Assembly (NCBI RefSeq): GCF_030028105.1
Contig: NC_092374.1
Coordinates: forward strand, 176,538,057-176,602,056
Length of the DNA: 64,000 nt
Direction: 5' to 3'
Origin: Mobula birostris
Lineage: Eukaryota
Shown in pieces: positions 3,931 through 36,249 of this stretch (position 1 is the first letter of the stretch; every line of letters starts with the position of its first letter). The position numbers were made by a program, and so were the translations under genes. A model generated the notes under the pieces. It searched no databases and had not been told where the DNA came from. It saw only the letters and a program-made list of their open reading frames with translations.

Positions 3931-6554
3931 AACTCCTTACGGACAGCTTCAGAGATATTGAACCATTTCCTCTATGGGGAGAGGCTACAGTTCTACTGGC
4001 CTTGCCACCACCGCCATCTGCTCACACTTGTCACCCTTTGAGATAAAGATACAGTTTCACTTCCAGACCAGCCAATGGCAATGATGTATTTCATGCTGCA
4101 CAGGCAGTGAGTGACCAAGTGGTAGGTCAACTACTGTTACTGAAGGTAGCTATTGCTTCTGCTCATAGCAATCACTGTTGCCCGTTCACTCTCTCTGCTT
4201 ATCATGCATTACCCAGCAACTGAATTTCATTGATCCTGTAGGGTTCCCCCAGAGGTAGACTGAGGTGTGGGTATGGAATAAACATGGATGCATCATTCAT
4301 CTCAGGGTCCAATAAGATACATCATTTCAGAATGGATGTGGCAGTATCCAATTAATGTCACAGTTTGGAAGAAGGCCATTCAGTCCATGGAGTCTTTACA
4401 AGAGCAGTGGAGCTTCTCTTGTTTTGTTTTTCAATGGTTTCCTACTGCAGTACAATTGTATCAGCTCTGAAATGAATTTATTCCAGTGGATGCTATACTG
4501 AGCTGGTACCTCACAGTAGGATATTGATATTTGGTACCTCAAAATCCCCCCTTTTATGTTGTGTTTGGAGTGCATGTGGAACAGCTGATTGGAATTTCCC
4601 TCAGTTTGGTTCTACTAAGAGAATATCTTTGGGAATTCTACCTGCATTTATTTGGTTACAGTGCCAAGGATATCAAATGTTGTATTTCCTTGGTAGTGAG
4701 TGCAGGGAGTGGAGAGGTGGGAGCTCAGTGTTGTCCTGCCTTATTTTATTGTTCCATTTTAGCGTAACGGGCAGTGCAAAGTAAAAGGTGTCCATGAGAT
4801 GAATCATCATTAAGGTGGCAATAATGTTTGAGCCTTGATGAAGCCCGTGCACTCTCTATTTCTTTAGCTGATGCTGGAGTTTTTGACTAGTTTCCTAAGT
4901 GACCTTGTGAGCATATTGGACCAATTGGGAAAACGGAACACAAGCGCAGTGGAAGTGTGGTAAAAGCCATGCAGATCTCAACTTATTCTCCCTGAAAACA
5001 AACCCAAAGTCATTAATCACATGTTTGAATGTAATGATGGAAAATGATGAAGACACTCACACTTTGGGTCACCCTTCTTCCTTTCCAGCATAAGCAAATG
5101 AGACTAATACCAGGTTCAAGAGATCGCTGTTGTGGTCAGGTTTGAATGGAGGTGATGTCTTGGTCGATGATTGAGGTGCAGCCTTATTCTTCCCAGAAAC
5201 TTTTCATGTTTATGACCTGATCTCCATGGATATTCCACTTCCACAACCTTCCCTGGCTGTGAATTTTCTGACACACTGGTGGTTGCTTCGGGGACGGATG
5301 CTTATCTTCAGTGCAGCTCTGAATAATGTTTTTTCTATTGCTCTCTTTGTTTTGTCCATGTCTGGTTTCAAGTTAGCCATCCTGTTGTGAATTGATCCAA
5401 CTTTTAATTTCTAGCATCTTCAAATTCTTGTTTCAAATTATCTAAACATAGTAGGAATTGTCTTATTTTTGTCATGCATCTTCCAAGCATTAAGCTTATC
5501 TACTTTGAATCTCTCCATTACCGTACTCATTTTAGGAATATGTCCATAAATTTACATTATACATTAGCAGCCTAACTGGCTACTGTAAACATTCCTGAGT
5601 GAAGGTGAGTGATAGGAGAATTAATCTCACAATAGAAAGTGCTGGTAAGTGCAGTTAACGTGTCGCGTCCTGACCATTAATGAGGAACTCCAATTTTATC
5701 ACATTTTGTCTGGTGTTGAGACATTGCACCCCAGTGAGTCTGAATATTCCAGTGAAGCTGCTGGATCTGAAACATGATCGGTACATTCTCTGCACAGATG
5801 CTGCCTGACCTGCTGAATGGTTTAAGCATTTCCCCTTTTTAATTTCAGATTTCAATTATCTGCAATTTATTCCTTTTCAGTTACTGCAAACCGAGTATGT
5901 TGATTGGTTTTTGACAAAGAAAGGCAACTATAAGGAATGTGGGGGAAATGGGATTAATTGTGTTGATATCAAGGCCGGCATAGTCTCAGAGGGCTGAACA
6001 GCCTCCTATATCCATTGAGAGAAGATGGAAAAGGCTTCCTTCCGATTTTCCATGCTTTCTAATTTGCTGCATTTCATATTAAGCACATCTATCCCTCACA
6101 CCAGACTATAAATTAGATACATTAGTGGTCAGGAAAAACAGGGAAAAGGGAAAAAAAATACCACCATTGGGTAGTTGTTGGAAAATATGTCTACTGACAG
6201 CATGGAGAGAGTGAGAAATGATGGCTGAGGTGGAAAGGAGTGCAGCCTCTATAGACAGAAAATGGACAACATTATTCTGATAATGATTTCTGTAACAGGT
6301 CCTAGATAGGAAGCAGGTAATTATGGAAGTAGATATTAGGAGCAGTCTATTAGTGCCTATGAATCTTCTGCATTGACTTGACCTGGGTGGTGCCAGGCAA
6401 TTAGACATCGAAGGGTAATATTGATGAAGGGAGTTGTTGGGTTAAACTCTGTTGGCATACGAAGGAAGAATATAAGTGTGAATTATAACATATTTGTTGG
6501 CTGACTGAAATATCTTCTTTCCATGTTGGAAACAGCTGAAATATTGTTCAGTTA

Positions 6555-6560
6555 TTTATT
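6555..6560 (-). promoter_or_regulatory. Candidate polyadenylation signal of the SNTX-GTPase gene
   Basis: AATAAA on the minus strand about 87 nt downstream of the stop codon at 6647..6649. Confidence 0.45.
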
Positions 6561-6646
6561 GAGAATGACCAAATTTAAATCAAAATTGAATCCCCAGGTT
6601 AGTAAAATATTCCAGGACATTTTCCCTTCTCTTTCTTCTCTTCCTC

Positions 6647-9600
6647 TCATGACTCTTCTTTTTTGGCAACTTTTTGTATTAACTTTGCCTTTTCCATTAC
6701 TGATCTCAGTGCCTCAATTCGATCCTTGAACCCAGGCTTTCTTTCTTCTTTCTCAAACTGTATCAGAAATTCAATATATTCCAAGTCAGATACTGGGCTT
6801 GGTCTTAGGGCTATTTCTCTAAGTCTTCTAATGCTCTGGGATATTTGTTCAATCAGCTTCTTCTCCTCATCCTCAACCTCAGATAACTCATGTTGAAGTT
6901 TCTTCTTGATCTTTGTCACTGTCATTTTCTCACCATAAGCTTTCTCATACTTTTTTTTTACATCATTGTATGTCCTCTTCTCTTTTTTAATTTTATCATA
7001 GAATTTGTATTGCTCATTAACGTGATTCGTATAGTTACACTTTTGAGGACAGACTTTGCAGTACCCCCACCAGTCCATTACTGTGCACATATATGCCATT
7101 ACACCATTTGCAGAGCTACAGGGACTGTGGCAAGTAAACTCACATTTCCGGCAGTTGTAATTATACGAATCTGTTTCCTTCTTTGCTCGAACTGTAGTGT
7201 CAACCTCATATTCAAAGTCCTTATTTGTTTCCAGCAATTCCTCGAATTGGTTCAGAGTTTGTGTTGTCTTCAAAAGTTCCACTGATTTGGTCACCCTGCT
7301 TTGAATTTGAAACTGCAGTCCTTCCACCATAGCCTCTAACTGCTTACGTTCCTTTAAAACTTCTTTGGTTAAACAGAGACTTTTTGCTTCCATTGTGTTC
7401 AGAACCCTAAAGAATTTCTTCATACTGCCAGCTCCCATCTTCCAGAACATTGCTTCAAAGTTATCATTGTCCTCTTCCACTTTGGATTTGGCATTGGAAC
7501 TCTCCTCATTGGCAGATTTTCCTGAGAATGGTCGCTGAGAAAATATGGCAGAATTGTTAAACTTGAAAAGTCTTGGGATCCCATTTTCATCTTTGCAACA
7601 CGGTACCTCAGATGCTTTCAAAGCCTCCAGAATAGGCGGTCGTTGTCCATCTGCGAAGGTCACCAGTATCTGAATGTTCTCTGCAATATCTTTCCCGAAA
7701 ATAGAGAGAATCGAATCAAAGATATATTTTTGTGCCTGGGTCAGGCGAGGCAAAGAAGATTGAACAACAAAGCACACTGCATCGACCTGATCAACGCCCC
7801 CTGGGGAAGTGAAAATCTCTCGAATTTGGTCAGTGATCACCTGGTCTTGGCGTATCCCTCTGGTATCTCCGAACCCAGGTGTATCTATGATGGTCAGAGC
7901 GTGATCGATTTTAAATCCAAACTGATGATGTATTTCGTAGGCTGTGACATAGGATGTCTGACTTTCAGCCTGAGATTTTCCTGTCTCTTCCAGTATTAAC
8001 TTGAACCTAAAGTTATCTCCCCATTCCACGCCCAAGATGTAGTTTATCATCCCATTGATGAGGGTTGACTTTCCTGAACCTGTTGCTCCCAGAAGCATAA
8101 TCGTCTTCATCGTGTGCTTTATGCTGGGGTTTCCCAGGCGGAATTTAACAAACTGTTTGGACTTACTGAATACCTCTTTCTGTAGCTCCAGCTTGTAAAT
8201 GGAAGGGTTTCCTTTGACAATTATATTAGATTCTTTGCATAGTTTTTGAGCGATTTTGTTTTCTACAATTTCTGTTTCACTGGACAATTTATCATGTGCT
8301 GCACTACAATCGGGTTCTGCACACTCAGCAGACACTTGAACTTCATGGCCGCCATAAGGTAATGTTCCATTCAATGAATCATCCTGGGACACCAGAGGAC
8401 TTTTAGAACCTGTGATGATACTGTTATAATCACTAGCCTTGCTGACCCCAACCTTTGTTACTGCTCTGTGTCGGAAACGATACTCCTTGTGTGGTTCTAA
8501 CCCTGCTATTGTAAACAAGTAGAATTTATCTGGTGTATCCAGAGTTGTCCATTCCTTTTGCTGAGGTCCCTTGTATTCTACCTTGTAACTCACAATCTCG
8601 GCGGCACCACATCTGGGTGGGTAAAACTGCAGTGTCACACTGTCCTGTGTTATTTCCCTAACCATTGGTCTCTCAGGCTGTGATGGAGGTTCATAGCAAC
8701 TGTTCTCTAGAAACCCTCCTTCGTACAGGTAAATAGATGCTCCTATGTTGCTGTCATCTTGCACAGCAGCAATAAGAAATTTTACATTCTCAACTGTTCT
8801 GTTTGTTGTGGCAAAGTCAAGGAATAATTGAGCTTTTTCTTTCATTTTTCTGCTTACAGCCTGTGAATGAAACCACTGCTCAACCTGTTGTGTTGCACAG
8901 GCTCCATCAGCAGGAACAGGTGTCTGTATTTTATGTGCTGTCTGAGTTTGGAGGTACTTAATTGCCTCTAATAGATAAAGATCCGCCTGATGTACTGTTG
9001 TAAATGTGAAGCAGACGACATAGTCTATTGCTGGTTCCATTAACTCTTCATTCAAATCACTCAATGATTTAACAATAGGAATGCCTTCCAATAGCCTGAG
9101 GTAAAACCTCACCACCTTCATCTCCTGTTCCTTGTCATCCAACCATCTGATTAGTGACTGGTGATTGAATGGAGAGTGCTTCATGTTCTTCAGTATATCC
9201 TGCAGTACCACTTCCTCCTTCCTACCTCCACGGATGGATGGCACAACACTTGCTAAACTTCTCTGGAAAACCATTTTGTATTCCAGACACATCTCCTGGA
9301 ATTGCAGTATCCTGTTGCAAATGTCAGGAAATAGATTGGCGACACTGTTATTCATCATATCATTGCATCTCATCACAGCATCACTAAGCTGTTCGAGGAC
9401 ACGCTGGCATTGATTGACCAAATGCACATTTATCTCTCTCACCAGTTGAGCAGCTTTTGAATCCAGATTCTTGAGAGGATGGAGCCAGACAGTAATAGGC
9501 ACTGAATTTTTTCCATCTGACCCCAGTAAGCTTGGGAGTCTCGCATAAATATTGACGGCATCTTGGAATGTAGTGGGATTGTTCTTCAGTGAGAAATCCC

Positions 9601-10125
9601 CATAAAATTTGCAGCTAAATTTCTCGACACTATGCTTTTGTTCTTTTGTCATTTCACCCTGAAATGCAAACTTGGGGAGACATTTAATCAATATCCCCAT
9701 GTTATACTCAATGTCTGGCAAGTTATCTGGTGAAGAATGTATTTGATCAAACACAAAGAAAGCTTGGGCTCCATACAACACTGCTGTAACAACATGTGTT
9801 GCAGACTCATTTTCAAAGACACTTGGGTAGGTAATATTTTGCTTTCCTAAGTGATTCATTGTCAGTTGTTCAAACCTGGTTGTTGTTTTGTACAGAAGGG
9901 CAACTCGGGCTTGTTGCTTGGATTTCTTTGCGTCATTGAGATATTTTGCAGATCCTTTCAGTTTCATTAATCCACTCAGGAAACTTGCTTTCAATGATCC
10001 TGTCATGTTGAGTGCATTGGCTTTCTCTTCTATGGAGTCTGAAGCGATGATTTCAAATTCAGTACTGGGCTGATCACTACTGTTAAGGTTTTGTTTAAGT
10101 GTCACTAAGTCCCACAAGGTGACAC
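6647..10125 (-). CDS. Coding exon 2 of SNTX/verrucotoxin-like MACPF + thioredoxin-like + FN3 + septin/AIG1-like GTPase + Cys/His cluster + coiled-coil protein (about 1188 aa with exon 1)
   Basis: Uninterrupted 1156-codon frame. Acceptor tgtag|GT GTC ACC TTG TGG at 10127/10125 completes SNTX-type IPGVTLWD. SNTX motifs HVVTAVLYGAQAFFVFD, FSCKFYGDF, PITVWLHPL, ASIYLYEGG. FN3 about 8410..8689. G1 GATGSGKS 8066..8089, G3 DTPG 7874..7885, G4-like TFAD 7649..7660. Cys/His cluster 7016..7153. Confidence 0.93.
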
Positions 10126-10221
10126 CTACAGAGCAAATCCAGAATAAAAATGCACATTAATGGCGGTAATTTGTGTAAGGTTAATCAACATTAATATTGG
10201 TTCATTGTAACCATTTTCTAT

Positions 10222-12064
10222 ACAGGTCGTGTTTTTTTTTGTAATATAATTTTTATTGAATTTTCAAAAAGAATACATGAAAAAATAGAATCTACCCTCC
10301 CCCCTCCCCTTAACCCTCCCCCCCCCATATATAGTCCTACCTAAAAACAAAGAAAGAAAAAAGAAAGAAAGAAAGAAAAGAACCGCCTGGGTATTGGAAG
10401 GTTTCCACATGCTCCATGGGATTCAAAATAAATTTGGTATAATTATTCGTTACTTTCCCCAAGTGACCAAAGTCTTTATCGGAGCACTTAAATATGCCAT
10501 CCTATCTTTTGTAAATAAGGGCGCCAAATATTCAAAAATGTTACATATTTATCTCTTAAATTATAAGTAATTTTTTTGAGTGGAATAGAACTAGCCATTT
10601 CATTATTCCAATGATCCATACTTAAATACGAATCAGATTTCCAAGTAACTGCTATAGTCTTCTTAGCTACTGCCAATGCAATTTTTATAAATTCTTTCTG
10701 ATATTTATTCAATTTAAGTTTCGGTTTTATCCCTTCAATATCACCTAATAGAAATAATACAGGGTTATGTGGAAGTTGAGTTCCAGTAATTTGTTCCAAT
10801 AAGATTCTTAAATTTATCTAAAAGGGTTGAATTTTAAAACAAGACCAAGTAGAATGTAAAAAAGTACCAATTTCTTGATTACACCGAAAACATTTATCAG
10901 ATAGATTTGAATGTAATCTATTTAGTTTTTGTGGTGTAATATATAATTGGTGTAAAAAATTATATTGTACTAATCTAGGTCGAACATTTATTGTATTTGT
11001 CATACTGTCAAGACAAAGTCTTGACCAATTTGTTTCATCAATATTAATATTCAGATCTGTTTCCCATTTTTGCTTTGACTTATGGGTTCCTTGTTTAATT
11101 GTCTGTTCTTGAATCAAATTATACATACAAGAAATAAATTTTTTAACTTTCCCTTTTCGTATTAAAATTTCAATTTCATTAGGTTTTGGCAAAAACATTG
11201 TTTGACCCAGCTTACCTTTTAAGTAAGCCCTTAATTGAAAGTAACAAAAGAAAGTATTATTAGATATTTTATATTTATCCTTTAATTGTTCAAATAACAT
11301 CAATATACCTCGTTCAAAACAATCTCCTATAAATTTAATCCCTTTTTGGTACCAATTATATAAAAGTTGATTGTCCATTGTAAAAGGAATAAGTCTGTTT
11401 TGGAACAAAGGTCTCCTTGCTAATAGAGATTTCTGTGTTTCATTATCAACATTTATCTTATTCCATAGATCAATCAAATGTGTTAATATAGGAGATTCTT
11501 TCTTTTCCCGTATCAATTTAGATTCCCATTTATATATAAAATCTTCAGGTCTATTTTCTTCTATCTTGTCTAGTTCTATTTTAATCCATGCTGGTTTTCG
11601 ATCATCGAAGAAAGATGCAATAAATCTAAGTTGATTTGCTTTATAATAGTTTTTAATGTTTGGAAGTTGTAACCCTCCTAACCCAAATTTACATGTCAAT
11701 TTTTCCAATGATATTCTTGACATTTTACCTTTCCAAAGAAATTTTCTCACACATTTATTTAACTCTTGAAAAAATTTCTGTGGCAATTGTATTGGTAATG
11801 TTTGAAACAAATACTGTAATCTAGGAAATATATTCATTTTTACAACATTGACTCTACCTACTAATGTTATTGGTAATATCATCCATTTGTCAAGATCTTC
11901 TTGAATTTTTTTCAATAGTGGTAAATAATTAAATTTATATAAATTCTTTACATCATTATCAAGTCTTATACCTAAATACTTTATACCATTTACCAGCCAT
12001 CTAAATTGGGTTACTAATCGACATTGACTATAGTCTCCTTTAGTAAGAGACAGGTCGTGTTTTT
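10222..12064 (-). mobile_element. 5'-truncated L1-clade LINE (about 1.8 kb) in the intron of the SNTX-GTPase gene
   Basis: ORF2 C-terminal half with zf-RVT-like CFRC...HSTWSC. ORFs 10818..11915 and 10488..10799 are in frame and separated by one TAG. Poly(A) at 10232..10240. TSD ACAGGTCGTGTTTTT at 10222..10236 and 12050..12064 (partly overlapping the tail). Confidence 0.93.
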
Positions 12065-13221
12065 GACTGAAAGTACATCATGCTAAATAGATTAGATTAG
12101 ATTATGAAGACACGCAGTTCTCTTCTATTGTCATTTAGTAATGCATGCGTTAAGAAGTGATACAATATTTCCTCCGGTGTGATATCACAAAACACAGGAG
12201 GAAATTAACTTGACTAATTAGTTCAATGGTGAGCTCATTGTGATATCTGTTTACCAGCCACTTTCTAAACTTAAACCTTTTTCCGCTCTTTGTGATGAGA
12301 CTGATTTCTGACAGATTCTGCTGCAGAAATGAGTTGTTTCATATAGTGACATGTTGAAAATGGAATAAAACATTGTTCAAGCATCCATAAACCTTTGCAC
12401 TTCTGACGTTATAAAAGGAAGGAAAGCCATTCAGGCAGGAATTGAAATTGGTTGGCCAGGAAACTGCCGTTGGGGACTATCTAGAGTTGCTGCTGGCATT
12501 TGACTACAGTGGAGAAGATGAGACTTGCCCTATCAGCAATATGAACATCTGACAGCTATATTAGATAGACCTTTGGCCCTCACCCTATCAGAAGTATTTC
12601 CCTTTGTGCTTTCAACACTCCCCATCCTTCTTTGTTATTAAGTTGTATTCTCTATTCCCCAGTTTTTAAAAAAAAGATATCTGACCAGAAACGTAAACGT
12701 GTTCTATTTCCAAAGATGCTAATTGACCTTCGTAGGCTGACGCATCAAGTGTTTCTAGCGATGAGTTACAAAACTTTGGGCCCTAATAACATCTCACTAG
12801 CCTCAGAATACTTCATTGTGCCCCGGAGATTTATCCAGCTATGTCCACAAATGTATCCTTTCTAGTGATAAAATTACCTGATATTCCACTATCACAATTA
12901 CTGATTTCTTCAGTCCAGTGAAAAATGTTCCAACCTGCACAGCTTCTTCCCATAATTTAGTTGCTTCAGTCCCTGCCTCACCCTTTTAAACCTCCTCTGT
13001 TATCTTTCCAGCTTAATGATGTTTTTCCAATGGCATGTTCATTGAAATTGAATATTCCAGCTGTGACATTCTTGTACACTGGCAACATAACACCACACCC
13101 ACTGTACTCAGCGACCTGATTGATGAAGACATTGTTTCAACACCCTGTCTACTTCAACGAATCGTGAACTTGTAATCATTGGGCAACACTTCCAAGGACA
13201 CTACCCTTCACTGCAAATGAC

Positions 13222-13287
13222 CTACAGTTCTGTGTATATATACATATATAAAACTAGGGTGTCTGATGATCTTTGCACAGTCCTGTA
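13222..13287. mobile_element. Possible tiny degenerate Tc1-type MITE
   Basis: TA-flanked imperfect inverted ends tacagttctgtg ... gcacagtcctgta. Confidence 0.4.
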
Positions 13288-14113
13288 TTTGTTAACATTG
13301 AGTGGAGAGGGAGTTTGTAATTCTGGCAGAAGGAAAATGTGTTGGGATAGCAACTGTGGAGTGCTGCGGGAGAACTGATGGACATGTGCTAGGGACAGGG
13401 GTAATGCAGGTGCAGACACACACAGGATAGAAATAGAAAGAAGTCAGCATTGAGTGTTGAGCCCTCCTCCTGTCGATGTCCAATTTATTACATGAGGGAC
13501 CATATTCTCTGTCCACTTGTTCATTTCAATTAATGTACTTAGAAAATCTCCTTCAATTCTCTTTAATTTTGCCTTCCAAAGCTATCTCATGACCTCCACC
13601 AACACTATTTACCCTTCTGATTTCCTTAAGTCCATTCCAACGACCACAAATTACTTCACAGATTCAATTGAACCCAACTGCCTAGACCAGGCTCAAGCCT
13701 CTGTCTTTTTTATGACAAGAGCCTTAATACACCTCATTAATGATTATTCCTTTCTCCTTCCACCTTTGGCCTTCACTCTAACAGGAACGCACATATATTT
13801 AACTCCCAAAACTCAATTTGAACAGCCACCCACTCTCTAGCATTGTCCTTCCCTGCAAATAGACTACTCCAGTCAACACTTGCTATGAGTTGGCTAATAT
13901 CATCAACATATGCATTGACATAATTTAAAAAAGGAGATGTTGAAATTGAAATTGGGCTGAGTACATCTGAGGAGCTGAGTTCCTAAATGATCCTGGTCAC
14001 TTTGCATAATTACTTTGAAACTTATGAAGTACTGGTCACTTCGTTGAGATAGGTAACCTGAATTTAACATGCTTCATGGATCAGCAGTGAGTCATGTGAT
14101 GGTAGAGCAATAC

Positions 14114-14201
14114 CTGGGATCAAAGCATCTGACCGGCAGTCGTACAGCATTCCCAATTGAAAAGGACGGCCCAGGGTAGGCAATTGAATGACCTCGTTCA
14201 T
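14114..14201 (-). CDS. Coding exon 1 of the SNTX-GTPase gene (exon 14114..14241)
   Basis: ATG at 14201 gives MNEVIQLPTLGRPFQLGMLYDCRSDALIP+G, the canonical SNTX N-terminal LGRPFxLGMLYD motif. Phase-1 donor G|GTATT at 14114/14113 matches the phase-1 acceptor at 10125. Upstream acceptor tttcag|G at 14242/14241. Confidence 0.93.
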
Positions 14202-14351
14202 CACTGCAGCAGGACCTGGAGACTCAGCAAACACCAGTATCCTGAAATGGAAGATATAATAAAATATACAATGCGGAATTCAGTTAGCATGGTTTACCGA
14301 TGTAATACTTGAGAGCAACCTTGTGATAGAATGCAGTGAGCTTCTTAAGTT

Positions 14352-24924: not shown

Positions 24925-27900
24925 CGAAGGTATAAACTCAGACATGTGCAAAAATAAAATAAGAGAAAAAAGGAACATAAAATTAGAGGGATGCCTATTG
25001 AACAAACTGCTCAGAAGTGCTAAACATTAAGTCTCAAGTAAGGGCCATGAGAAATCAGCTGGAGGGAAATTATTCATCTGCCCCCAGCCTCGTCTAGGTC
25101 AGCAAGAAATGGATCCCAGATAGCCGAAAATTTTATAACTGAATTGGTTCTCAAGAACCTAAGTCTGTCTATTGTATGACTGAGATCATGTCAGACATCC
25201 TTCTCCGAAAAGAAGGGGGAGAGGGTGATTTCCATTCCCTCAAAATAAGTCTTTTAGTGACAGTCAGCCCCAGCATCAGAGACTGTTCTATGGCTGTAGG
25301 GAGGCATAGAGTGGATTGTGAACAGCCGAAGGTGGTGAGACCAGCTTCCAACGGGAAGGATCTTTTATAGGCCTTTGAGTACCAGTCAAATATTTTGGAC
25401 CAAAATCCAGACAGTGATGGGCAAAACCAAAAGGTGTGTGACAACGTGCTCTCCATCCTTTGACATCTATCACACATTGGCAAGACAGAAGGGTAAATCC
25501 TGTGCAACCAGAGTTTAGAATAGTGAAGACGGTGGACAACTTTGAACTGGGTCAGTTGGTTTCTGCTGTTAACAGAGCAACCCTGTATCATAGACAAACT
25601 CTTGTCCCAGGCAGCTTCAGATAATTCAATGCCCAATTCCTCTCTCCAGGCCTCCCTGACCTTCACAGTAGAGGCTATATTACAGCCATTGAACAAACGT
25701 ACAAACTTAGAAACGAGATGCTTGGAGTCAAGAGGGTTCTTTAAGATATCAAAACATGTATGCTTCCCTGGAAGGATTTCAAAATTACAAATCTTAGATT
25801 GAATATAGTGCCTAATTTGTAAGTAACGAAAATACTGCGAATGAGGCAGCTCAAATTTCTCACTCAGCAGACTAGATGTGGCAAACCATCTATGTACAGG
25901 TCTTTGATAGAAACTAGACCCTTCTCCCTCCAAGCATGGTAGGTTTGATCTGACCATGAGGGTAGAAAGGAGTGATTGAAACAGATTGTTGATTGTACGG
26001 AGGTCTCTGGTAAATTCAGAACGCTCCTAAACTGATTTAGAATTCTGACAAAATTTTTCAAAACAAAACTTGAACTTTTTGAAATTCCAGGCTTTTCTAA
26101 TTTAGAGAACAGCATGGCTGGCAAGGAGGAATTGACAACAGAGCTAGACTCCATATATAGCCACAAGGGGGCCCCAGGTATTAAGTTATCCGGAGCTCCC
26201 TGTTGCCAAAACATTAGAGCCCTAACATTGACAGCCCAATAATAATGTCTGAATACAGGTAATCCCAGCCCTCCTTCAGACTTGGGCTTTTGCAAATGGA
26301 TTTTCGAAATCCTGTGATTTTTATAGTTCCAGATGTAAGACATAATTAAGGAGTCCAACTCTTTAAAGAAGGCTGGTGTAAGAAAAATGGGGAGATTTTG
26401 ACAAAGATAGAGAAACCTAGGAAGGGAAACATTTTAATTGAATTTATACGGCCAATCATGGACAGAGGTAAGGTTTTCCAACTTTCTATATTCTGTTTAA
26501 ATTTTGAGATAAACTCCGCGAAGTTTAATTTAAATATTAGTTTAGGATCTTTGGGTATTGCCAAACCAAGATAAGTAAAGTGATCTTTAACTACTTTAAA
26601 CGGGACACTTTCCAAAAAACCCGGCGTGTAGACGTCGGAGAGGGGCATGATGTCACTTTTTCTTCAATTGATTGAGTATGCTGATAGTCTACCAAAAGAT
26701 GTGAATATATCCAGAAGAAGGGGGACTGACTTCTCTGGGTTTTGTAAGTACAGTATCACATCGTCAGCATATAAACTAATAAGTGTTTCAATACCTCCCA
26801 CTTTCAAACCCACAATATTTGGGTGACTTCTTATTTTTAGGGCGAGGGGATCTACCGCGACGGCAAAGAGGGCCGACAAGAGGGGACAACCCTGCTGAAC
26901 TGAAAGGTGTAGAGTTGAATAGTTGAATAGTTGAATTGTCACCATTGGTTATAATACAACACATTGGGCTGGCATATATTAGTTTTACCCAGGATATAAA
27001 TGACTCACCAAACCCAAACCTGTACAGTGATTCAAACATGTAAGGCCACTCAATCTGGTCAAAAGCCTTCTGTGCATCAAGGGATAAAATTGCCGCCCCA
27101 CTAGCTTTCCCATGATCAGAATACATAGTATTAAGTAGGCACCTAACAGTGGAAAAAGAAAACCTGCCCGGGATGAATCCTGTCTGATCAGGATGAATGA
27201 TAGTTGACAAATGCTTATTTAGCCGGTTAGCTAGCATTTTAGTGGTTACTATTCTATTGAAGTTCTGGAGTGCAATGGCCCTATAGGTGTCCAGATCTAT
27301 TTCTTCTTTACCTTTCTTTAGAATGAGTGAAATGTTAGCCTCCTAGAACATTTTAGGCAAGGCTTTATCTCTCTTAGAGTAAGATATCATTCTGAGGAGA
27401 AGTGGGGCAAGAATATCACAAAATTCCTTATAAAATTCGAAGCCAAATCCATCTGGACCAGCTGCCTTGCCAGACGGAAATGACTTAATGGCAGAAGTTA
27501 TTTCTTCCAATGTGAAGTCAGAACCTAGGTCCTCCCTAGCAGCGTCACTAAGTTTCGGCATTACAAGAGAGTCAAAGAAGTCTTTCAAATCAGATTGAGT
27601 GGCATCGCATTTAGAAGTGTAGAGTGCACTGTAAAATTCTTTAAAACAGTCATTTACCTCCTTGGGGTTGACTAACAGGGTGCCCGCCCTCGATCTAATG
27701 CAATGGATTGTCCTGGACACTCCGAAGCTGCCATGCCAGGATCACCCCAGGCTTGCCCGCATTTCGAAATGCTTTTGTAGTCAAATAAATAACCTCCTCT
27801 TAAAATTGTTATTTATTTGACTACCCAAGATGCAATTGTACTCATATTTAAGCTTCATTATCTTATTGTAGTCTTCAGAGGATTTTGTGGTCTGGTATGT

Positions 27901-28354
27901 TGCTTCGAGGTTTCGGAGAGTATTCTCAATCTCTAATAATCGCCCCTCTCTCTGCCTCTTAGCAGCGGATTCATATGAAATTACATACCCACGAATTACA
28001 ACTTTTAATGTCTCCCAGAGTGTGGAATCTGACACCTCTCCGTTATCATTGATTTCTATAAAATGTTTTAATCTGTTGGTGATGTTTTCTATAAATTTCT
28101 TATCAGTGAGTAGGGAAGGGTTAAAACGCCAGAAAAAGATATGTTTGGGAAGGGAAAGATTTATGGACATTGTCAAGGGGCTATGGTCAGAGATTAATAT
28201 GTTATCATACTTTGTATTTGTAACATGAGAAATTAAATGACAATCAACAAAAAATAGTCTATTCTACTGCAGGATTTATGAACATGAGAATAATAAGAAT
28301 AGTCCTTGACGGTGGGATGTTGAACTCGCCAGATATCTACGAAATTCCTAGTTT

Positions 28355-29980
28355 GAAAAGGAGGAGGTGTTTGCTACATTGAGGCAAATTAAAGTGGATA
28401 AATCCCCAGGACCTGACAGGGTATTCCCTCGGACCTTGAAGGAGACTAGTATTGAAATTGCAGGGGCCCTGGCAGATATATTTATAATATCGTTGTCTAT
28501 GGGTGAGGTGCCGGAGGATTGGAAAATGGCTCATGTTGTTTCGTTGTTTAAAAAAGGATTGAAAAGTAATCCGGGAAATTATAGGCTGGTAAATTTGACG
28601 TCGGTAGTGGGTAAATTATTGGAAGGAGTACTAAGAGACAGAATCTACATGCATTTGGATAGACAGGACTTATTAGGGAGAGTCATCATGGCTTTGTGCG
28701 TGGGAGGTCATGTTTGACCAATCTATTGGAGTTTTTCGGGGAGGTTAACAGGAAAGTGGATGAAGGGAAGGCAGTGGATGTTGTCTACATGGACTTCAGT
28801 AAGGCCTTTGACAAGGTCCCGCATGGGAGGTTAGTTAGGAAAATTCAGTCACTAGGTATACATGGAGAGGTGGTAAATTGGATTAGACACTTGCTCAATG
28901 GAAGAAGCCAAAGAGTGGTAGTAGAGGATTGCTTCTCAGAGTGGAGGCCTGTGACTAGTGTTGTGACATAAGGATCAGTGCTGGGTCCATTGTTATTTGT
29001 CATCTATATCAATGATCTGGATGATAATGTGGTAAATTGGATCAGCAAATTTGCTGATGATACAAAGATTGGAGGTGTAGTGGACAGTGAGGAAGGTTTT
29101 CAAAGCTCGCAGAGGGATTTGGACCAGCTGGAAAAATGGGCTGAAAAATGGCAGATGGAGTTTAATACAGACAAGTGTGAGGTATTGTACTTTGGAAGGA
29201 CAATCCAAGGTAGAACATACAGGGTAAATGGCAAGGCACTGAGGAGTGCAGTAGAACAGAGAGATCTGGGAATACAAATACAAAATTCCCTAAAAGTGAC
29301 GTCACAGGTAGATAGGGTCGTAAAGAAAGCTTTTGGTACATTGGCCTTTATTAATCAAAGTACTGAGTATAAGAGCTGCAATGTAATGATGAGGTTGTAT
29401 AAGGCATTGGTGCGGCCGAATCTGGGGTATTGTGCTCAGTTTTGGTCAACAAATTACAGGAACTATATTAATAAGGTTGAAAGAGTGCAGAGGAGGTTTA
29501 CAAGGATGTTGCCGGGACTTGAGAAACTCAGTTACAGAGAAAGGTTGAATTGGTTAGGACTTTATTCCCTGGAGTGTAGAAGAATGAGGGGAGATTTGAT
29601 AGAGGTATATAAAATTATGATGGGTATAGATAGAGTAAATGCAAGCAGGCTTTTTCCACAGAGGCAAGGGGAGAAAAAAAAAGAGGGCATGGGTTAAGGG
29701 TGAAACGGGAAAAGTTTAAAGGGAACATTTGGGGGGTGGGGCTTCTTCACATAGAGAGTGTTGGGAGTGTGGAATGAGCTGCCAGACAAGGAGGTAAATG
29801 CGGGTTCTTTTTTAACATATAAGAATAAATTGGACAGATACATGGATGGAAGGTGTATGGAGGGATATGGTCCGTGTGCAGGTCAGTGGGACTAGGCGGA
29901 AAATGGTTCGACACAGCCAAGAAGGGCCAAAAGGCCTGTTTCTGTGCTGTAGTTTTTTCTATGGTTTCTATGGTTTCTAT
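28355..29980 (+). mobile_element. 5'-truncated CR1 inserted into L1 ORF2
   Basis: RT motifs YMDFSKAFDKVPH and FADDTK; (ttctatggt)n tail. The L1 frame IK|TRNFVDIWR is restored when it is removed. Confidence 0.93.
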
Positions 29981-31995
29981 TTAATAAAATTGTATAGCAC
30001 CTGCACTGACATGATATTTGAGGGCGGGCGGGAGGACAATCTATCAAAATATGGATCTAGGTAGCAATTCAAATCACCGCCGATTATTATATTTGAATTA
30101 CTGGCATTCCTAAAAATAAATGTCTCCTCTGTGTTTGGACAGTAAATATTAAGGATATTTAGCGGAAACGAATTAATGGTGCCAGACGCCATGATATACC
30201 TGCCGAGAGGATCCGTGGTCATGGAAGTTAGTTGAAATGGAATTTTTTTTCTAAAAAGGATAGCCACACCACGAGCATGAGAAGTCAATGGTGACTGGTA
30301 AACCTGCGATATCCAGCCAGACATCAATTTGCGTTGCTCAGTTACTTTGAAATGGGTTTCCTGTAGAAAAATCACATCTGCAGATAGAAATTTTAGATGG
30401 CTAAAAACTTTGTCATCTTAACAACAAGACCAAGCCCCTTAACATTCCAAGAGACTATTGTACTATCTTTGACCCCCAGCTGCGTTTTACCACGAGATCT
30501 CTGCATATGAGAATAAAAAAAAGAGATCATTACAGTTGACGGAAAACATAGTAAACAGGGCCAAATGGCTGGCAGCCTCATAAAAAAATAGCATACAAAA
30601 AAGAACATGTCTGAGCTATAAACAAGAACAACACACACACTAACCCACCCCACTTCGTGTCTCCCTAAACCAGACACATAGTTCCCCATTTCCATCCAAA
30701 AAGGAGCAGCTGGGCAGGTAACTAACATTACACAATTATCACAAACCCCCTCTCCGAGAAAATTTGTAACGCAAACTATATAATACCGTTAAAAAATGCT
30801 ATTATGGCTGGGGAGAGTTATCCAATATCCGCACCTGAAGCTGGGCATTCATAACACCAACTCAAAATTAACCATTGTAATAACAGACATATTTGAAACA
30901 TTCTCTGCAATTAAATCCCAGTGCAGCATACAGCATTGTAAAACTACATATAGCAAGCAGGTCCCTCCCCTTATCCCAACATGTAGACCGGCACAAGTAT
31001 AAGCTGAATAAACAGTGTCAGTATATCTACTCCCATTTGCGTGCGTTATACCTTTCAAAGAACCGTGCTGCTTCCTTCGGGTTGTCGTAGACTATAGCCG
31101 CTCCTCCGTCCTGATGACAAATATAGAGCCTGGCCGGGAACCGCAAGGTGTGCTTGAATCCTCCATCACGCAGAGTTTGCAGTACATCCCGAAAGGCAAG
31201 ACGTTGAGTCATCACCTCACTGGTATAGTCCGGGAAGATCAAGAACTTATTTCCCTTGTACTCCATGGGTCGTAGTCTGCCGCAGCGTAAAATCAGCTCT
31301 TTCAGTTGAAAATGGTGAATACGTGCCAAAATGGTACGCGGCTTAGCGCCGATGTCGGCTTCGGCTGGAGAGAGCGATGTCCACGATCAGCTTCAACCGG
31401 GTGCGGGATATGCTCTTCCCCGAGCAACTTGGGAATCAGTCTGGAAACAAATTCGGTGGCCGGGATTACCATCCTCCTCGCCTTCTTGTCGCCCTACAAT
31501 CTTAATGTTACGTCTCCGGGAACGGGCCTCTAAGTGAAGCACATTAGCTTGGAGCTGGCTATTTTGTCTCATTAGCTCTAAGTACTTAGCTTCAAGCGCG
31601 TGCTTCGAGGTCGCTAGCGGTTAGTTCTTGGTTAGCCACACGGGCTTGTAGATCGGCCTGTGAGGCAACAAGCGTCTGGAACTTGGTCTGAAAAACATCA
31701 AAGCGGTTGTTCATGCCGCGCGGAACTGACTCAGATGACAACTGATTCAGATGCCTAATTCCTTGCACATGGCGTAAGTTTTGTCCAGCGGTATCTCAGA
31801 GACGGAGAAGTTACTTACAGGTGCGTTGTCAGCATTAACACTAGCTCCGGTAGCTTGGCAGTCAGCGGTCTTAGCTTTGTTTGCCTTCGGCATTGTCAAA
31901 CTGTTCCATACACTTAGTACAGACAAAGAGTGTACACGCACACTGTTGGCCCATGAATAAATAAAATAACGGTATAATAGTAATAGTAATTTTAT

Positions 31996-34900
31996 AGAAC
32001 ATAGAACATAGAATAGTACAGCACAGTATAGGCCCCTTGGCTCACAATGCGCCGACCCTCAAACCCTACCTCCCATATAACCCCCCCCCCACACCTTAAA
32101 TTTCTCCATATGCCTGTCTAGTAGTCTCTTAAACTTTACTAGTATATCTGCCTCCACCACTGACTCAGGCAGTGCATTCCGCGCACTGACCACTGTCTGA
32201 GTAAAAAACCTTTCTATAATATCCCCTTTGAACTTCCCACCCCTTACATTAAAGCCATGTCCTCTTGTGTTGAGCAGTGGTGCCCTGGGGAAGAGGCGCT
32301 GGCTATCCACTCTATCGATTCCTCTTATTATTTTGTACACCTCTATGATGTCTCCTCTCATACTCCTTCTCTCCAAAGAGTAAAGCCCTAGCTCCCTTAA
32401 TCTCTGATCATAATGCATACTCTCTAAACCAGGCAGCATCCTGGTAAATCTCCTGGGTACCCTTTCCAATGCTCCCACATCCTTCCTATAGTGAGGCGAC
32501 CAGAACTGGACACAGTACTCCAAGTGTGGCCTAACCAGAGTTTTATAGAGCTGCATCATTAGATCGTGACACTTAAACTCTATCCCTCGACTTATGAAAG
32601 CTAACACCTGATAAGCTTTCTTAACTACCCTATCCAACTGTGAGGCAACTTTCAGGGATCTGTGGACATGTACCCCCAGATCTCTCTGCTCCTCCAAACG
32701 TCCCTGGATCCCATGCCTCCTGACTTTCTGAATAAGTCTACCGTGTGGAACCTTGTCAAATGCCTTACTAAAATCCATATAGATCAAATCCACTACACTA
32801 CCCTCATCTATATGTCTGGTCACGTCCTCAAAGAACTCTTTCAGGCTTGTTAGACACGATCTGCCCTTCACAAAGCCACGCTGACTGTCCCTGATCAGAC
32901 CATGATTCTCTAAATGCCCAGAGATCCTATCTCTAAGAATCTTTTCCAACAGCTTTCCCACCACAGACGTAAGGCTCACTGGTTTATAATTACCTGGACT
33001 ATCTCTACTACCTTTTTTGAACAACGGGACAACATTCGCCTCCCTCCAATCCTCCGGTACCATTCCCATGGACAACGAGAATATAAAGATCCTAGCCAGA
33101 GGCTCAGCAATCTCTTCCCTCGCCTCTTGCAGCAGTTGGGGAATATTCCGTCAGGCCCCGGGGCCTTATCTGTCCTAATATATTTTAACAACTCCAACAC
33201 CTCTTCTCCCTTAATATCAACATGCTCCAGAACATCAACCTCACTCATATTTCCTCACCTTCATCAAGTTCCCTCTCATTGCTGAATACCAAAGAGAAGT
33301 ATTCATTGAGGACCTTGCTCACTTCCACAGCCTCCAGGCACATCCTCCCACCTTTATCTCTAATCAGTCCTACCTTCACTCCTGTCATCCTTTTTTTTCT
33401 TCACATAACTGAAGAATGTCTTGGGGTTTTCCTGTACTCTATTTGCCAAAGCCTTCTCATTCCCCCTTCTTGCTCTTCTCAGCCCCTTCTTAAGCTCCTT
33501 TCTTGCTTCCCTATATTCCTCAATAGACCCATCTGATCCTTGCTTCCTAAACATCATGTATGCTGCCTTCTTCCACCTGAATAGATTTTCCACCTCACTT
33601 GTCACCCATGGTTCCTTCACCCTACCATTCTTTATCTTCCTCACCGGGACAAATCTATCCCTAACATCCTGCAAGAGATCTCTAAACATCGACCCCATGT
33701 CCATAGTACATTTCCCTGCAAAAACATCATCCCAATTCACACCCACAAGTTCTAGCCTTATAGCCTCATAATTTGCCCTTCCCCAATAAAAAATTTTGCT
33801 GTCCTCTCTGATTCTATCCTTTTCCATGATTATGGTAAAGGCCAGGGAGAGGTGGTCACTGTCCCCCAGATGCTCACCCACTGAGAGATCTGTGATCTGA
33901 CCCAGTTCATTACCAAGCACTAGATCTAGTATGGCATTGTCCCTAGTCGGCCTGTCCACATACTGTGACAGGAATCCATCCTGGACACACTTAACAAACT
34001 CTGCCCCATCTAAACCCTTGGAAATAGTCAGGTGCCAATCAATATTAGGGAAGTTAAAGTCAACCATGGTAACAACCCTGTTATTTTTGCACCTTTCCAA
34101 AATATGCCTCCTAATCTTCTCCTCTGTATGTCTGTTATATAGAATACCCTATTGGGGGCCTATAGAATACCCCCAGTAGGGTAACTGCTCTCTTTCTGTT
34201 CCTGATTTCCTCCCATACTGACTCAAAAGAGGATCCTGCTACATTACCCACCCTTTCTGTAGCTGTAATAGTATCCCTGACCAGTAATGCCACCCCTCCT
34301 TCCCTTTTTCCATCCTCTCTATCCCCTTTAATGTACTGAATTCCACAAATAATGAGAATCCGTTCCTGCCCTGGTGCCAGCCAAGTCTCTGTAATGGCCA
34401 CTACATCATAATTCCATGTATGTATCCAAGCTCTCAGTTCATCACATTTGTTCCTGATGCTTCTTGCATTGAGGTACACACACTTCAGCCCTTCTACCTT
34501 ACTGTCTTTACACCGTTTAGTCTGCTTCTCTTTCCTCAAAGCCTCTCTATATGTTAGATCTGGCTTTACTCCATACACTTCTTTCACTGCTCTATCGCTC
34601 TGGGTCCCATCCCCCTTGCAAATTAGTTTAAACCTTTCCGAACCATGCTAGCAAACCTACTTGCAAGGATATTGCTCCCCCTCGAGTTCAGGTGCAACTC
34701 ATCCAATTTGTACAGTTCCCACCTTCCCCAGAAGAGATCCCAATGATCCAAAATCTAAAACCCTGCCCCCTGCACCAACTCTTCAGCCACGCATTCAACT
34801 GCCATCTCCTCCAATTCTTACCATCACTGTCACGTAACTCTGGCAGCAATCCTGAGAACGCCATCCTTGAGGTCCTGTTCTTCAGTCTTCTGCCTAGTTC

Positions 34901-35634
34901 CCGAAACTCACACTTCAGGACCTCATCCCTCTTCCTGCCTATGTCGTTGGTCCCAACATGTATCACGGCTTCTGGTTGCTTTCCCTCTCATACCAGGATG
35001 TTGTGTACCCAGTCAGAGACATCCCGGACCCTGGCACCCGGGAGGCAACAACCCATGTGGGTGTCCTTCTCACGTCCACAAAATCTCCTGTCTGCTCCAC
35101 TGACTATAGAGTCTCCAATGACGACAGCTCTCCTCTTCTCCGTCCCACTCTTCTGCACCACAGGGTCAGAATTAGTGCCGGAGGCCCTGCCACCGTGGCT
35201 CACACCTGGTCGGTTGACCCCGCCAACAGTATCCAGGATGGTAAAATTACTATTCAGGGGAATGGCTACAGGGGTGCTCTGCACTACCTGCTGCTCACCT
35301 TCGCTTTCCCCCCTCTGACTGTCACCCAGTGATCTGCTTCCGACAGCCTAGGTGTGACTACCTCCCAGTAGCTCTCATCTATGACTGCTTCCTTCTTCCT
35401 TATGAGTTGATGGTCATCCAGCTGCTGCTCCCGATTCCTTACACTGTCTTCCAGATCGCCCAGCCGTATGCACTTCTGGCAGATGTGACTGCGGGAGAGG
35501 GGCGTTCCCCCAAGATTGCCACATCTCACATGAGAGGCACATCACCATCTCAGGAGGCATCGTAAAGACTAATTGCGTTCAAGCTTGTCCTCAGCCTCTT
35601 CTCGTCGAAGCCTCTCGAGTCAAAGCTTCAAAGC
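31996..35634 (-). mobile_element. CR1 with ORF1 (zinc finger + SGNH esterase) and internally deleted ORF2, inserted in the L1 5' UTR
   Basis: ORF1 HICQKC, VVIGDSIV, IHVGTNDIG. ORF2 YLNARSI, AITETWL, YMDFSKAFDKVPH. (agaacat)n tail at 31996. Possible TSD TTTAT at 31991..31995 and 35635..35639. Confidence 0.92.
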
Positions 35635-36249
35635 TTTATTGAGGCCTCGGAGAGGAACACTGAACAAACACAGCTAATCCATACACATGTGCACTGGCGC
35701 CCCATACAGATCCTGCTTACGTTATTGTTTTATGGATTTGCTACGCATGTCAGCAGGAAAAAAATATCTCAGGACACATATTTACTCTGATAACTAGTTT
35801 TACTTTGAACTTTCAAATTTCAACTCTGAGAAGTCCCAATTAGAGTGTCTGAAATATTTGATCTGCTATTAGGGGACGAGACGGGTACGGTGAGGGAAGT
35901 TTATGTAGGTGAACACCTTCCATCCAGTGATCATAAAGCCATGTGTTTTGAAGATAATTATGGAAAGAATAGGCCTGGCCATTGTGTTAAGATTCTAAAT
36001 CTGAAAAAGACCAATTTTGATGGTATCAGGAAGGATATATCCAGTATGGAATAGGGCAGGCTGTTTACTGGCAAAGGGATACTTTGTAAGTGGGAGAACT
36101 TGAAAAGTGAAAAATTCAGTATACGGACCTGGTACGTTGTATATTCCAAAGGCCCAGTCAGCAGTAGGTTGGTTTCCCGCAGGTCGGCGAAGCTTGTTTA
36201 GAAGGAAGGTTTCGCGGGCGTGCAGGGTCATTCTGAAGGGCCGAACAGC

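Follow-up and report, generated by a model that had tools for sequence, protein, structure and literature searches.

The best-described relatives of the protein considered here are stonustoxin (SNTX) and (neo)verrucotoxin. The SNTX venom toxins are alpha/beta heterodimers that are expressed in the venom gland and form haemolytic pores, and SNTX acts outside cells even though it has no signal peptide. The MACPF/CDC pore-formers of animal defence (perforin, complement C9 and perforin-2) travel through the secretory pathway, and pH, proteolysis or partner proteins keep them in check; we know of none that is joined to a nucleotide switch. MACPF domains can also serve non-lytic roles. The stonefish genome paper reports long two-exon sntx-like genes on chromosome 6, with full-length Iso-seq transcripts, and leaves their extra domains undescribed (PMC10566576). 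In studies that leave the architecture unspecified, fish genes with an SNTX-like annotation respond to infection or are associated with it (PMC5684396, PMC7316828, PMC12107551). In the literature searched, we found no description of a fusion of stonustoxin with a GTPase or FN3 domain, and likewise none of the zebrafish locus si:ch73-170d6.2.

The gene described here lies in a 64-kb stretch of DNA from the ray Mobula birostris, the whole of which is referred to as the window. Its product shares with stonustoxin and (neo)verrucotoxin (PDB 4WVM) a MACPF/CDC, a FAT-like and a thioredoxin-like domain in the same order, likewise without a signal peptide, and the first two exons of SNTX genes and of the ray gene are laid out alike (PMC10566576). 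The homology ends with the thioredoxin-like domain. The venom toxins end in a PRY/SPRY (B30.2) domain within a subunit of ~700 aa, whereas the ray protein has neither that end nor that size and continues with an FN3 domain, an FN3 remnant, a GTPase and a Cys/helical module; Pfam gave no PRY or SPRY match anywhere in its 1188 residues. It has no venom context and gives no sign of an alpha/beta pair; tblastn found one copy in the window and no tandem paralogue within the 64 kb. We are nearly certain that the gene is an intact, single-copy, two-exon member, in a myliobatiform ray, of a conserved and functionally uncharacterised SNTX-FN3-GTPase-Cys8His family in which other modules stand where stonustoxin has PRY/SPRY.

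An intact two-exon gene

The coding span (6647..14201) lies on the minus strand, as do all features given below, and runs from the ATG at 14201 to the stop codon at 6647-6649 in two coding exons with canonical splice sites. Exon 1 (14114..14201) comprises 88 nt, that is 29 codons plus one base, and codes for the MACPF/CDC domain's conserved N-terminal strand. In the splice model its donor (CAG/GTATTG) opens a phase-1 GT..AG intron (10126..14113), which closes at the acceptor CTGTAG/GT of exon 2 (10125..6647); most of exon 2 is the 1156-aa ORF at 6647..10117 of the ORF list. The original prediction spoke of an intact spliced protein of about 1188 aa, and joining the two exons gave exactly 1188 aa with no internal stop. 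The first 36 residues are identical to those of the 1188-aa RefSeq model P0001 from Mobula hypostoma, to which the spliced protein is 96% identical overall, and the skate paralogue L001 shares both the 88-nt exon 1 and the phase-1 intron. A candidate poly(A) signal, AATAAA, recognised from sequence only, is located 86 nt 3' of the stop codon (6555..6560). A gene-model artefact in which two genes are read through as one was rejected for this locus because both halves sit in one uninterrupted exon.

The surroundings of the gene are repeat-rich, and two nearby GPCR ORFs have only distant relatives in the PDB. The intron contains an ORF fragment in sense orientation (10818..11915; GC 0.29; no Pfam match) that is, from a reading of its translation by eye, L1-like retrotransposon sequence outside the protein. 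An A-run and an AATAAA precede the exon-2 acceptor by ~100 nt.

A stonustoxin-type N-terminal module

Pfam and motif coordinates confirmed the predicted order of SNTX MACPF/CDC, helical, thioredoxin-like, FN3, GTPase and Cys/His regions. Phmmer aligned residues 7-483 to residues 37-511 of the solved SNTX 4wvm_A (E 6.8e-96) with gaps of at most 5 residues, and a further match to the stonustoxin/(neo)verrucotoxin subunits had E 2e-90. The exon-2 part of the SNTX-type MACPF/CDC domain occupies 9401..10125 (spliced residues ~30-271, by phmmer to 4wvm_A). It is followed by the stonustoxin helical (FAT-like) domain at 9116..9400 (PF21109, 117.5 bits; pLDDT 80-92) and by the SNTX thioredoxin-like domain (Thioredoxin_11) at 8687..9085 (PF18078, 119.5 bits), in which a CxxC scan detected no CxxC motif. 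The MACPF_SNTX profile (PF24674) scored 20.1 bits on exon 2 alone, under the Pfam cut-off of 27, and 33.0 bits against the same cut-off on the full-length orthologue P0001. SNTX was the best structural match of the whole AF2 model in Foldseek. The MACPF part of that model, which was built for the 1158-aa exon-2 protein with 49 relatives in the alignment, had a pLDDT of 25-46. Because confidence is low there, the MACPF assignment is carried by the homology to 4WVM, and the state of the two pore-forming helix clusters cannot be read off the model. Judged by this homology, the N-terminal module is a MACPF/CDC, FAT-like and thioredoxin-like unit of the SNTX type.

FN3 region and GTPase domain

The FN3 domain (8429..8683; PF00041, 38.5 bits) matched FN3 domains of titin and Robo3 both in sequence (E 1.5e-9 to 7.7e-16) and in fold (Foldseek TM 0.83-0.85, rmsd about 2 Å). 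Two FN3 domains are the rule in relatives, and the ray protein has one plus a remnant of the second. The remnant is a low-confidence linker at 8228..8428 (AF2 pLDDT below 50 at exon-2 residues 573-622) that is ~53 residues shorter than in 46 of the 48 aligned relatives; across this set the gap is common only to this gene, P0001 and P0002.

A septin/AIG1-class (TRAFAC) GTPase domain was predicted at 7538..8113 from Pfam, motifs and Foldseek. The P-loop GATGSGKS (G1, 8063-8089), the switch II DTPGFGD (DTPG, G3, 7865-7885) and the G4 TFAD (7649-7660) were all checked by motif coordinates, and the predicted domain has the G1, the G3 DxxG and the G4 with a guanine-specifying Asp by which P-loop GTPases are recognised. 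Pfam scores were 38 bits for AIG1, 30.8 for Septin and 28.5 for MMR_HSR1. The AIG1 (PF04548; cut-off 27) and Septin (PF00735) scores both exceed their cut-offs, yet the AIG1 match covers positions 1-127 of the 212 in the profile, and the Septin match covers positions 6-76 of 280. The septin-specific C-terminal part was not matched by PF00735, and a family profile run against the PDB aligned with septins only in short P-loop/switch II matches. The top Foldseek matches of the G domain were GIMAP7, GIMAP2, Toc34 and septin-2, with E values from 3e-8 to 1e-5 and a target TM of 0.5-0.6; identity to the two GIMAPs was 17-18%. In 49 relatives from chimaera to ostrich, G1 (GxxxxGK[ST]), DTPG, TFAD and a Q-T pair in the putative switch I are invariant or nearly so. 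Two parts of the protein are kept best: the G domain, with 69-71% identity to chimaera and ostrich, and the MACPF domain, with 53-57%.

C-terminal Cys8His/helical module

The C-terminal module (6650..7462) was modelled by AF2 as long helices around a long beta-hairpin region, with a pLDDT of ~80-90. A C-terminal coiled coil had been predicted for this part; the long helices are there, and a crude heptad count detected no canonical coiled-coil register, no window having at least 7 of 8 hydrophobic a/d positions. A Cys/His cluster at 7022-7153 contains eight Cys and one His that are invariant in the family alignment, and is probably a two-metal site. The module gave no significant match in Pfam (E up to 10), NCBIfam, the PDB (by sequence and by family profile) or PADLOC; these searches returned only matches at the level of the P-loop, such as LeoBC (5e-6). 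When the model of the GTPase plus C-terminal module was submitted to Foldseek, G-domain matches dominated and no clear counterpart for the Cys/helical part was detected. The GTPase plus C-terminal module has 1888 representatives, and in nearly all of the 150 that were listed it lies near the C-terminus.

Distribution and origin of the family

Similar fusions had been suspected to lie uncharacterised in fish databases, and the database survey found them there and far beyond fish. Hundreds of proteins labelled "uncharacterized" from chimaera, sharks, teleosts, sturgeon, turtles and ratite birds have the same architecture, and many of those listed, of 1188-1400 aa, align over ~100% of the query. 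Many paralogues occur per genome, several of them on one chromosome or scaffold. The ray gene has the domain order, two exons, G motifs and Cys8His cluster of this long form, and differs in having one FN3 domain plus a remnant where the long form has two. Its own orthogroup was present, among the matches listed, only in myliobatiform rays (Mobula, Hypanus).

Two Daphnia species also encode SNTX-like-FN3-GTPase fusions, and the ray and Daphnia sequences are 44% identical over the GTPase and C-terminal module. This cassette, usually with FN3 in front, is pan-bilaterian. Its partners include CARD (Owenia, without FN3), B-box (Mya, Dreissena), SNTX-like MACPF (Daphnia) and plain FN3 arrays. The chimaera Callorhinchus has SNTX-PRY/SPRY proteins of ~700 aa beside the long SNTX-FN3-GTPase form. 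The original prediction held that the targeting domain had been replaced by FN3 plus a GTPase. As worded, that claim was not supported: because both forms coexist in Callorhinchus, the cassette is an independent bilaterian module and Daphnia has fusions of its own, the change between PRY/SPRY and FN3-GTPase has no established direction.

Proposed mechanism and alternatives

The SNTX-FN3-GTPase form is a real, conserved and uncharacterised variant of the SNTX family, for which a mechanism can plausibly be put forward. As predicted, no signal peptide follows the ATG, and no TM segment was found either (highest 19-residue Kyte-Doolittle mean 1.35). Absence of a signal peptide is no proof of intracellular action, because SNTX lacks one and acts outside cells. 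A GTPase and a Cys-rich metal site suit a cytosolic protein, and we infer that the SNTX-FN3-GTPase protein stays in the cytosol. There, the GTPase and C-terminal cassette would serve as a nucleotide-dependent switch or assembly platform; in its closest structural relatives, GIMAPs, Toc34 and septins, the nucleotide site is where the proteins dimerise or polymerise. Assembly of the cassette would gather the N-terminal MACPF/CDC modules, which could then assemble into a ring that inserts in a target membrane, and the outcome might be a cell-autonomous defence or cell-death effector akin to NTPase-driven executioners, whose conserved NTPase carries a variable N-terminal effector. Homology and partner domains suggest that the protein may bind or be gated by GTP, form pores and serve in immunity, the partners CARD, B-box and SNTX-like MACPF being typical of cell-death and innate-immune proteins. 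We tentatively favour a GTPase-assembled cytosolic pore-former, acting as a cell-autonomous effector, as the most likely mechanism. Several points count against it: the G domain is 16-18% identical to GIMAP, Toc and septin structures, AF2 gave the MACPF part low confidence, MACPF domains can be non-lytic, and this orthogroup lacks a C-terminal tail of ~31 residues in addition to its FN3 loss.

The MACPF/CDC module might instead be non-lytic and bind membrane or protein, which would make the protein a GTPase scaffold or membrane remodeller that works on organelles or lipid droplets as a septin or GIMAP does. The proximity of the G domain to GIMAP and septin folds, the occurrence of the cassette behind plain FN3 arrays without an effector domain and the absence of a confident MACPF fold in AF2 would all suit such a role. 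However, the MACPF domain is the second best conserved part of the protein and aligns to lytic SNTX without large indels, and the CARD and B-box partners found elsewhere suggest signalling or effector functions over a pure scaffold; we consider a non-lytic role unlikely. Somewhat less likely again is a defensive cytolysin that escapes by a non-classical route or when cells rupture, in the skin or spine epithelium of rays for instance, that acts outside the cell, and that the GTPase only stores, restrains or sorts inside the producer. Many lineages without venom have the long form (turtles, ratites, sturgeon, chimaera), although the protein has homology to a venom toxin likewise devoid of a signal peptide and its orthogroup is confined, among the matches listed, to myliobatiform rays, a tail-spined group. 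Moreover, a stingray venom transcriptome paper names SNTX only in its table of bony-fish venom components, and in stonefish the proteome of the venom maps to SNTX genes of 700 aa, with just one peptide for each of two SNTX-like proteins in that 8-gene cluster (PMC10566576).

Two explanations concern the gene itself. The locus could comprise two units whose real products, SNTX-FN3 and GTPase-only, arise separately through an internal promoter, internal polyadenylation or processing, and the full 1188-aa chain would be made rarely or never. Databases do contain numerous SNTX-FN3 models (600-800 aa) and GTPase-only models (500-800 aa), and an adjoining pair of this sort, on the same strand, is found at the skate locus L002. 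We nevertheless regard this arrangement as improbable here, as both halves form one uninterrupted 3.48-kb exon, length and frame are kept in two further species and the long sntx-like genes of stonefish have full-length Iso-seq transcripts (PMC10566576). Alternatively, loss of the second FN3 domain and of the tail might mark a decaying paralogue without function, a pseudogene in the making. The lineage-specific losses of ~53 and ~31 residues and the repeat-rich neighbourhood, with an L1-like insertion in the intron, would be in keeping with decay, but the orthologues of Mobula hypostoma and Hypanus sabinus have both losses, and each of the three species keeps an intact ORF of 1188 aa. With identity to Hypanus at 79-92% by domain and all catalytic-type motifs kept, decay is very improbable.

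If the GTPase-assembled pore-former is correct, it would be a new means of arming and restraining a pore-former within the cell's own cytosol. The long form extends from chimaera to ostrich with many copies per genome, and its C-terminal chassis is common to invertebrate CARD and B-box proteins; a large bilaterian GTPase family so far without a function would gain one, and the venom stonustoxins would be one offshoot of an older intracellular family. A wider proposal is possible, if rather doubtful: SNTX-FN3-GTPase proteins may constitute an unrecognised class of cytosolic nucleotide-switched pore-formers, old, present from crustaceans to ratites and apparently not in therian mammals, whose cassette is a bilaterian executioner chassis that also carries CARD and B-box heads. 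In this proposal the GTPase and its Cys8His/helical partner would respond to a cue and, by assembling with GTP, would set up a MACPF ring on a target membrane inside the cell. Should the mechanism prove wrong, the survey would still be useful for annotation. Many of the "stonustoxin-like" genes of fish immune transcriptomics and of horizontal-transfer studies may be of the long form, and this form needs an annotation of its own, distinct from that of the 700-aa toxins.

Comparison with known systems

The stonefish chromosome 6 sntx-like genes and LOC134347306 of Mobula hypostoma are of the same kind as the ray gene, with an exon 2 that reaches the stop codon. The proteins of Owenia, Mya, Dreissena and Daphnia and that of zebrafish si:ch73-170d6.2 have the same GTPase and C-terminal module, their N-terminal partner varies, and all are uncharacterised. 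GIMAP/AIG1, Toc34/33 and septins match the predicted G-domain fold of the ray protein in Foldseek, and the switch II DTPGFGD is identical in alignments with yeast and human septins; the ray protein differs from these GTPases in its own conserved Cys8His/helical C-terminal module. Perforin-2/MPEG1 and perforin, in which a MACPF domain serves host defence, resemble it by analogy, and perforins, which lack an NTPase, are secretory or luminal. NLR/STAND executioners differ from the ray protein, which is a TRAFAC GTPase and has no LRR, WD or TPR sensor; what the two would share, by analogy only, is a membrane-attacking N-terminal domain mounted on a nucleotide-switch chassis.

Gene structure and genomic setting

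The gene originally predicted at this locus proved to be real, with a spliced minus-strand protein of 1188 amino acids that contains no internal stop. A scan of the window for open reading frames gave a 1156-amino acid frame on the minus strand, running from 10117 down to 6647. The first coding exon starts with the ATG at 14201 and extends for 88 nt to 14114 on the same strand, with a donor (CAG/GTATTG) at 14114/14113, and the exon-2 acceptor (CTGTAG/GT) at 10126/10125 puts the reading frame back. When joined, the two exons comprise 3567 nt, corresponding to 1188 codons and a stop. The N-terminal 36 residues are identical to those of the 1188-amino acid RefSeq orthologue from Mobula hypostoma (P0001), and the two proteins are 96% identical overall. 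A skate paralogue (L001) has an exon 1 of the same 88-nt length and a phase-1 intron at the identical position; because the intron is common to relatives, it was not picked just for bridging a gap. An AATAAA sequence is found on the minus strand 86 nt past the stop codon. The window contains no N and one copy of the gene.

The sole intron (10126-14113) carries a sense-oriented ORF fragment (10818-11915, minus strand) that has no Pfam match and that reads as L1-like from its translation. Its A-rich tail and an AATAAA come to within about 100 nt of the exon-2 acceptor, on the upstream side. GC content within the intron falls to 0.29, and compared with Mobula hypostoma the gene covers about 1.8 kb more. 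The remaining window is repeat-rich, and 26788-44689 is dense in transposon ORF fragments, including LINE reverse-transcriptase and endonuclease pieces on both strands, a 650-amino acid RVT_1 ORF (42737-44689, plus strand), and a Tc1/mariner HTH fragment (37093-37503, minus strand). Strong swings in GC skew at 28-30, 32-36, and 42-44 kb coincide with such fragments. Apart from this gene, the window holds just one pair of host-like genes, class-A GPCR ORFs (7tm_1) that lack introns and lie in tandem on the minus strand (46306-47229 and 56457-57374). The two are 76% identical to each other, and even the nearest solved proteins are remote from them (vasopressin V2, AT2, and GPR139; E ~4e-8 to 1e-6).

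A stonustoxin-type N-terminal half

Pfam searches with exon 2 returned Stonustoxin_helical (117.5 bits), Thioredoxin_11 (8687-9085, 119.5 bits), and fn3 (8429-8683, 38.5 bits), all on the minus strand, and the positions first proposed for the thioredoxin-like and FN3 domains were correct to about 20 nt. For MACPF_SNTX the score was 20.1 bits against a cut-off of 27 when exon 2 was used without exon 1, and 33.0 bits against the same cut-off in full-length P0001 (residues 5-175). The exon-2 protein matched both chains of solved stonustoxin (4WVM) among PDB sequences, with E values of 6.8e-96 for the alpha and 2e-90 for the beta subunit. The alignment to the alpha chain covers its residues 37-511 with a longest gap of at most 5 and ends where the thioredoxin-like domain ends. 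In SNTX, the MACPF/CDC domain spans residues 1-265 and the FAT domain residues 266-385 (review, PMC8704401). AF2 gave no confident fold prediction for the MACPF part, and a motif scan of the thioredoxin-like domain found no CxxC motif.

A second FN3 domain is present in 46 of the 48 aligned relatives. The window protein, P0001, and the orthologue from Hypanus sabinus (P0002) have in common a gap of about 53 residues in this domain (window 8228-8428), and all three are missing a tail of about 31 residues at the C-terminus (the protein ends at 6650); nearly all other family members retain both segments. The remnant of the second FN3 was modelled with pLDDT below 50 (exon-2 residues 573-622). Since the gap is common to the Mobula and Hypanus proteins, the deletion predates the split between these genera, and the ORF has been open ever since.

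A distinct GTPase followed by a Cys/His module

Exon 2 also matched AIG1, Septin, and MMR_HSR1 (Pfam; 38.0, 30.8, and 28.5 bits, minus strand). The corresponding motifs, all on the minus strand, are a P-loop (GATGSGKS, 8063-8089), switch II (DTPGFGD, 7865-7885), and G4 (TFAD, 7649-7660), and a conserved Q-T pair lies in the likely switch I. In an alignment of 49 relatives from chimaera to ostrich, these motifs and the Q-T pair are invariant or nearly so. Conservation across the alignment is highest in two parts: the G domain, with 69-71% identity to its chimaera and ostrich counterparts, and the MACPF domain, with 53-57%. Among solved proteins, septins and Toc34 come nearest in sequence, with weak matches that extend only over the P-loop and switch II (E 4e-4 at best with the single protein, 7.5e-5 with a family profile). 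The GTPase and C-terminal module were modelled with AF2 from 52 input sequences (mean pLDDT 79.6), and this model was closest in fold to GIMAP7 (E 2.8e-8), GIMAP2, Toc34/33, and septin-2; these GIMAP, Toc, and septin matches had target TM-scores of 0.5-0.6 at 16-18% identity. The G domain thus represents a family of its own among the TRAFAC GTPases of the septin/AIG1/Toc group, one that probably lies outside the septin, AIG1, and Toc families themselves.

The module that follows was unrecognised by every library searched. In the AF2 model, an acidic linker of low conservation precedes two helices, of 22 and about 40-50 residues, and a long beta-hairpin; behind these lie a Cys-rich stretch, another pair of long strands, and then a further four helices. 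The original prediction had placed a coiled coil at the C-terminus, and a heptad test did not support a canonical one. The family alignment shows nine invariant positions, eight Cys and one His, with the spacing C-x2-C-x3-C-x3-C-x10-C-x8-C-x2-C-x3-C-x4-H; divergent relatives retain this set, and it is visible also in the Daphnia alignment. This invariance suggests two putative metal sites, with zinc or an iron-sulfur cluster as candidate occupants.

Distribution and origin of the architecture

The window protein matched 1531 database proteins, with full-length coverage for many of the best 120; taxon statements here rest on the best 120-150 matches per search. Among those best 120, the long form (SNTX-type half, FN3, GTPase, and Cys8His module) occurs in rays, skates, sawfish, many sharks, and Callorhinchus; in sturgeon, mormyrids, many percomorphs, and salamanders; and in turtles, alligator, lizards, tuatara, ostrich, and rhea. 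Almost all long-form matches listed are named 'uncharacterized protein'. Paralogues lie on one chromosome or scaffold in Mobula birostris (five), Pristis, Amblyraja, and Leucoraja (several each). Therian mammals were not found among the best 120 matches of any of three protein searches; the relative found in echidna is GTPase-only. Fishes, amphibians, and reptiles commonly have the GTPase module as a stand-alone protein of 500-800 amino acids. At an Amblyraja radiata locus (L002), an SNTX-FN3 model of 651 amino acids (5835-9945) and a GTPase-only model of 509 amino acids (10001-11530) lie 55 nt apart on the same strand, and because they adjoin, a long-form gene may have been split in two to give some of the 'short' and 'GTPase-only' entries in databases.

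With the 279-residue C-terminal piece as query, we retrieved 1888 representative proteins (50% clustering), of which 419 reached E ≤1e-30. The piece sits near the C-terminus of almost every one of the 150 representatives listed, whose lengths range from 242 to 2324 amino acids. The 34 long representatives scanned all contain a septin-like G domain, 25 contain FN3, and 19 the stonustoxin helical domain. Daphnia carinata (P0315) combines two SNTX-like units with FN3 and GTPase, and Daphnia sinensis (P0341) has SNTX-like, FN3, and GTPase. The cassette of GTPase and Cys8His/helical module follows a CARD in the annelid Owenia fusiformis (P0335) and B-box zinc fingers plus FN3 in the bivalves Mya arenaria (P0355) and Dreissena polymorpha (P0386); other proteins have 8-10 FN3 repeats ahead of the GTPase. 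Identity between ray and Daphnia is 44% in the GTPase module (E 9e-126) and about 25% in the MACPF part, an unevenness that could reflect strong constraint or transfer.

Callorhinchus has both the long form and SNTX-PRY/SPRY proteins of about 700 amino acids, so both architectures must be at least as old as the ancestor of jawed vertebrates; because Daphnia fusions exist, the long form may be the older of the two. The earlier proposal that FN3 and a GTPase replaced the targeting domain describes the difference between the architectures fairly, but as an account of their history it is not supported.

No paper describing a MACPF-GTPase fusion, or naming the long-form family, was found in the literature searched. 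A stonefish genome paper describes the difference between the two architectures at gene level and saw long genes, whose domains it does not describe (PMC10566576). In a study of horizontal transfer in teleosts, the alignment for an orthogroup named 'stonustoxin subunit alpha' is 3804 bp long, which is the length of the long form (PMC12107551). 'Stonustoxin subunit alpha' was up in sea bass leukocytes facing nodavirus-infected cells (PMC5684396), and sntx beta-like expression was linked to viral load in a salmon QTL study (PMC7316828); the architecture is unresolved in both.

Localisation and possible mechanism

The predicted lack of a signal peptide was borne out, as the N-terminus is not hydrophobic; the 19-residue Kyte-Doolittle mean reaches a maximum of 1.35 over the whole protein. 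The GTPase and the putative cysteine-metal site suit the cytosol and point to a location there, with the caveat that venom SNTX likewise has no signal peptide. A released cytolysin, which the example of venom SNTX would allow, is distinctly unlikely. That the protein is a non-lytic scaffold is rather unlikely; the cassette occurs with CARD and B-box partners, and the MACPF domain is among the best conserved parts of this family. The adjoining Amblyraja models would fit one locus with two separate products, which we consider very improbable for a gene whose single frame spans both halves. A decaying copy is hardly credible: although the protein has lost FN3 and tail segments, its frame is intact.

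The best-supported reading, which we hold tentatively, is a cytosolic effector in which the cassette would control the pore-forming module, and all of its functional steps we infer from homology and from the joint conservation of the protein's two ends. The N-terminal module would form pores, and the conserved GTPase and C-terminal cassette would serve it both as a switch and as a platform for assembly. This cytosolic-effector reading draws further on the partners with which the cassette is found (CARD, B-box, and MACPF) and on the nearest relatives of the G domain, which dimerise in a nucleotide-dependent manner.
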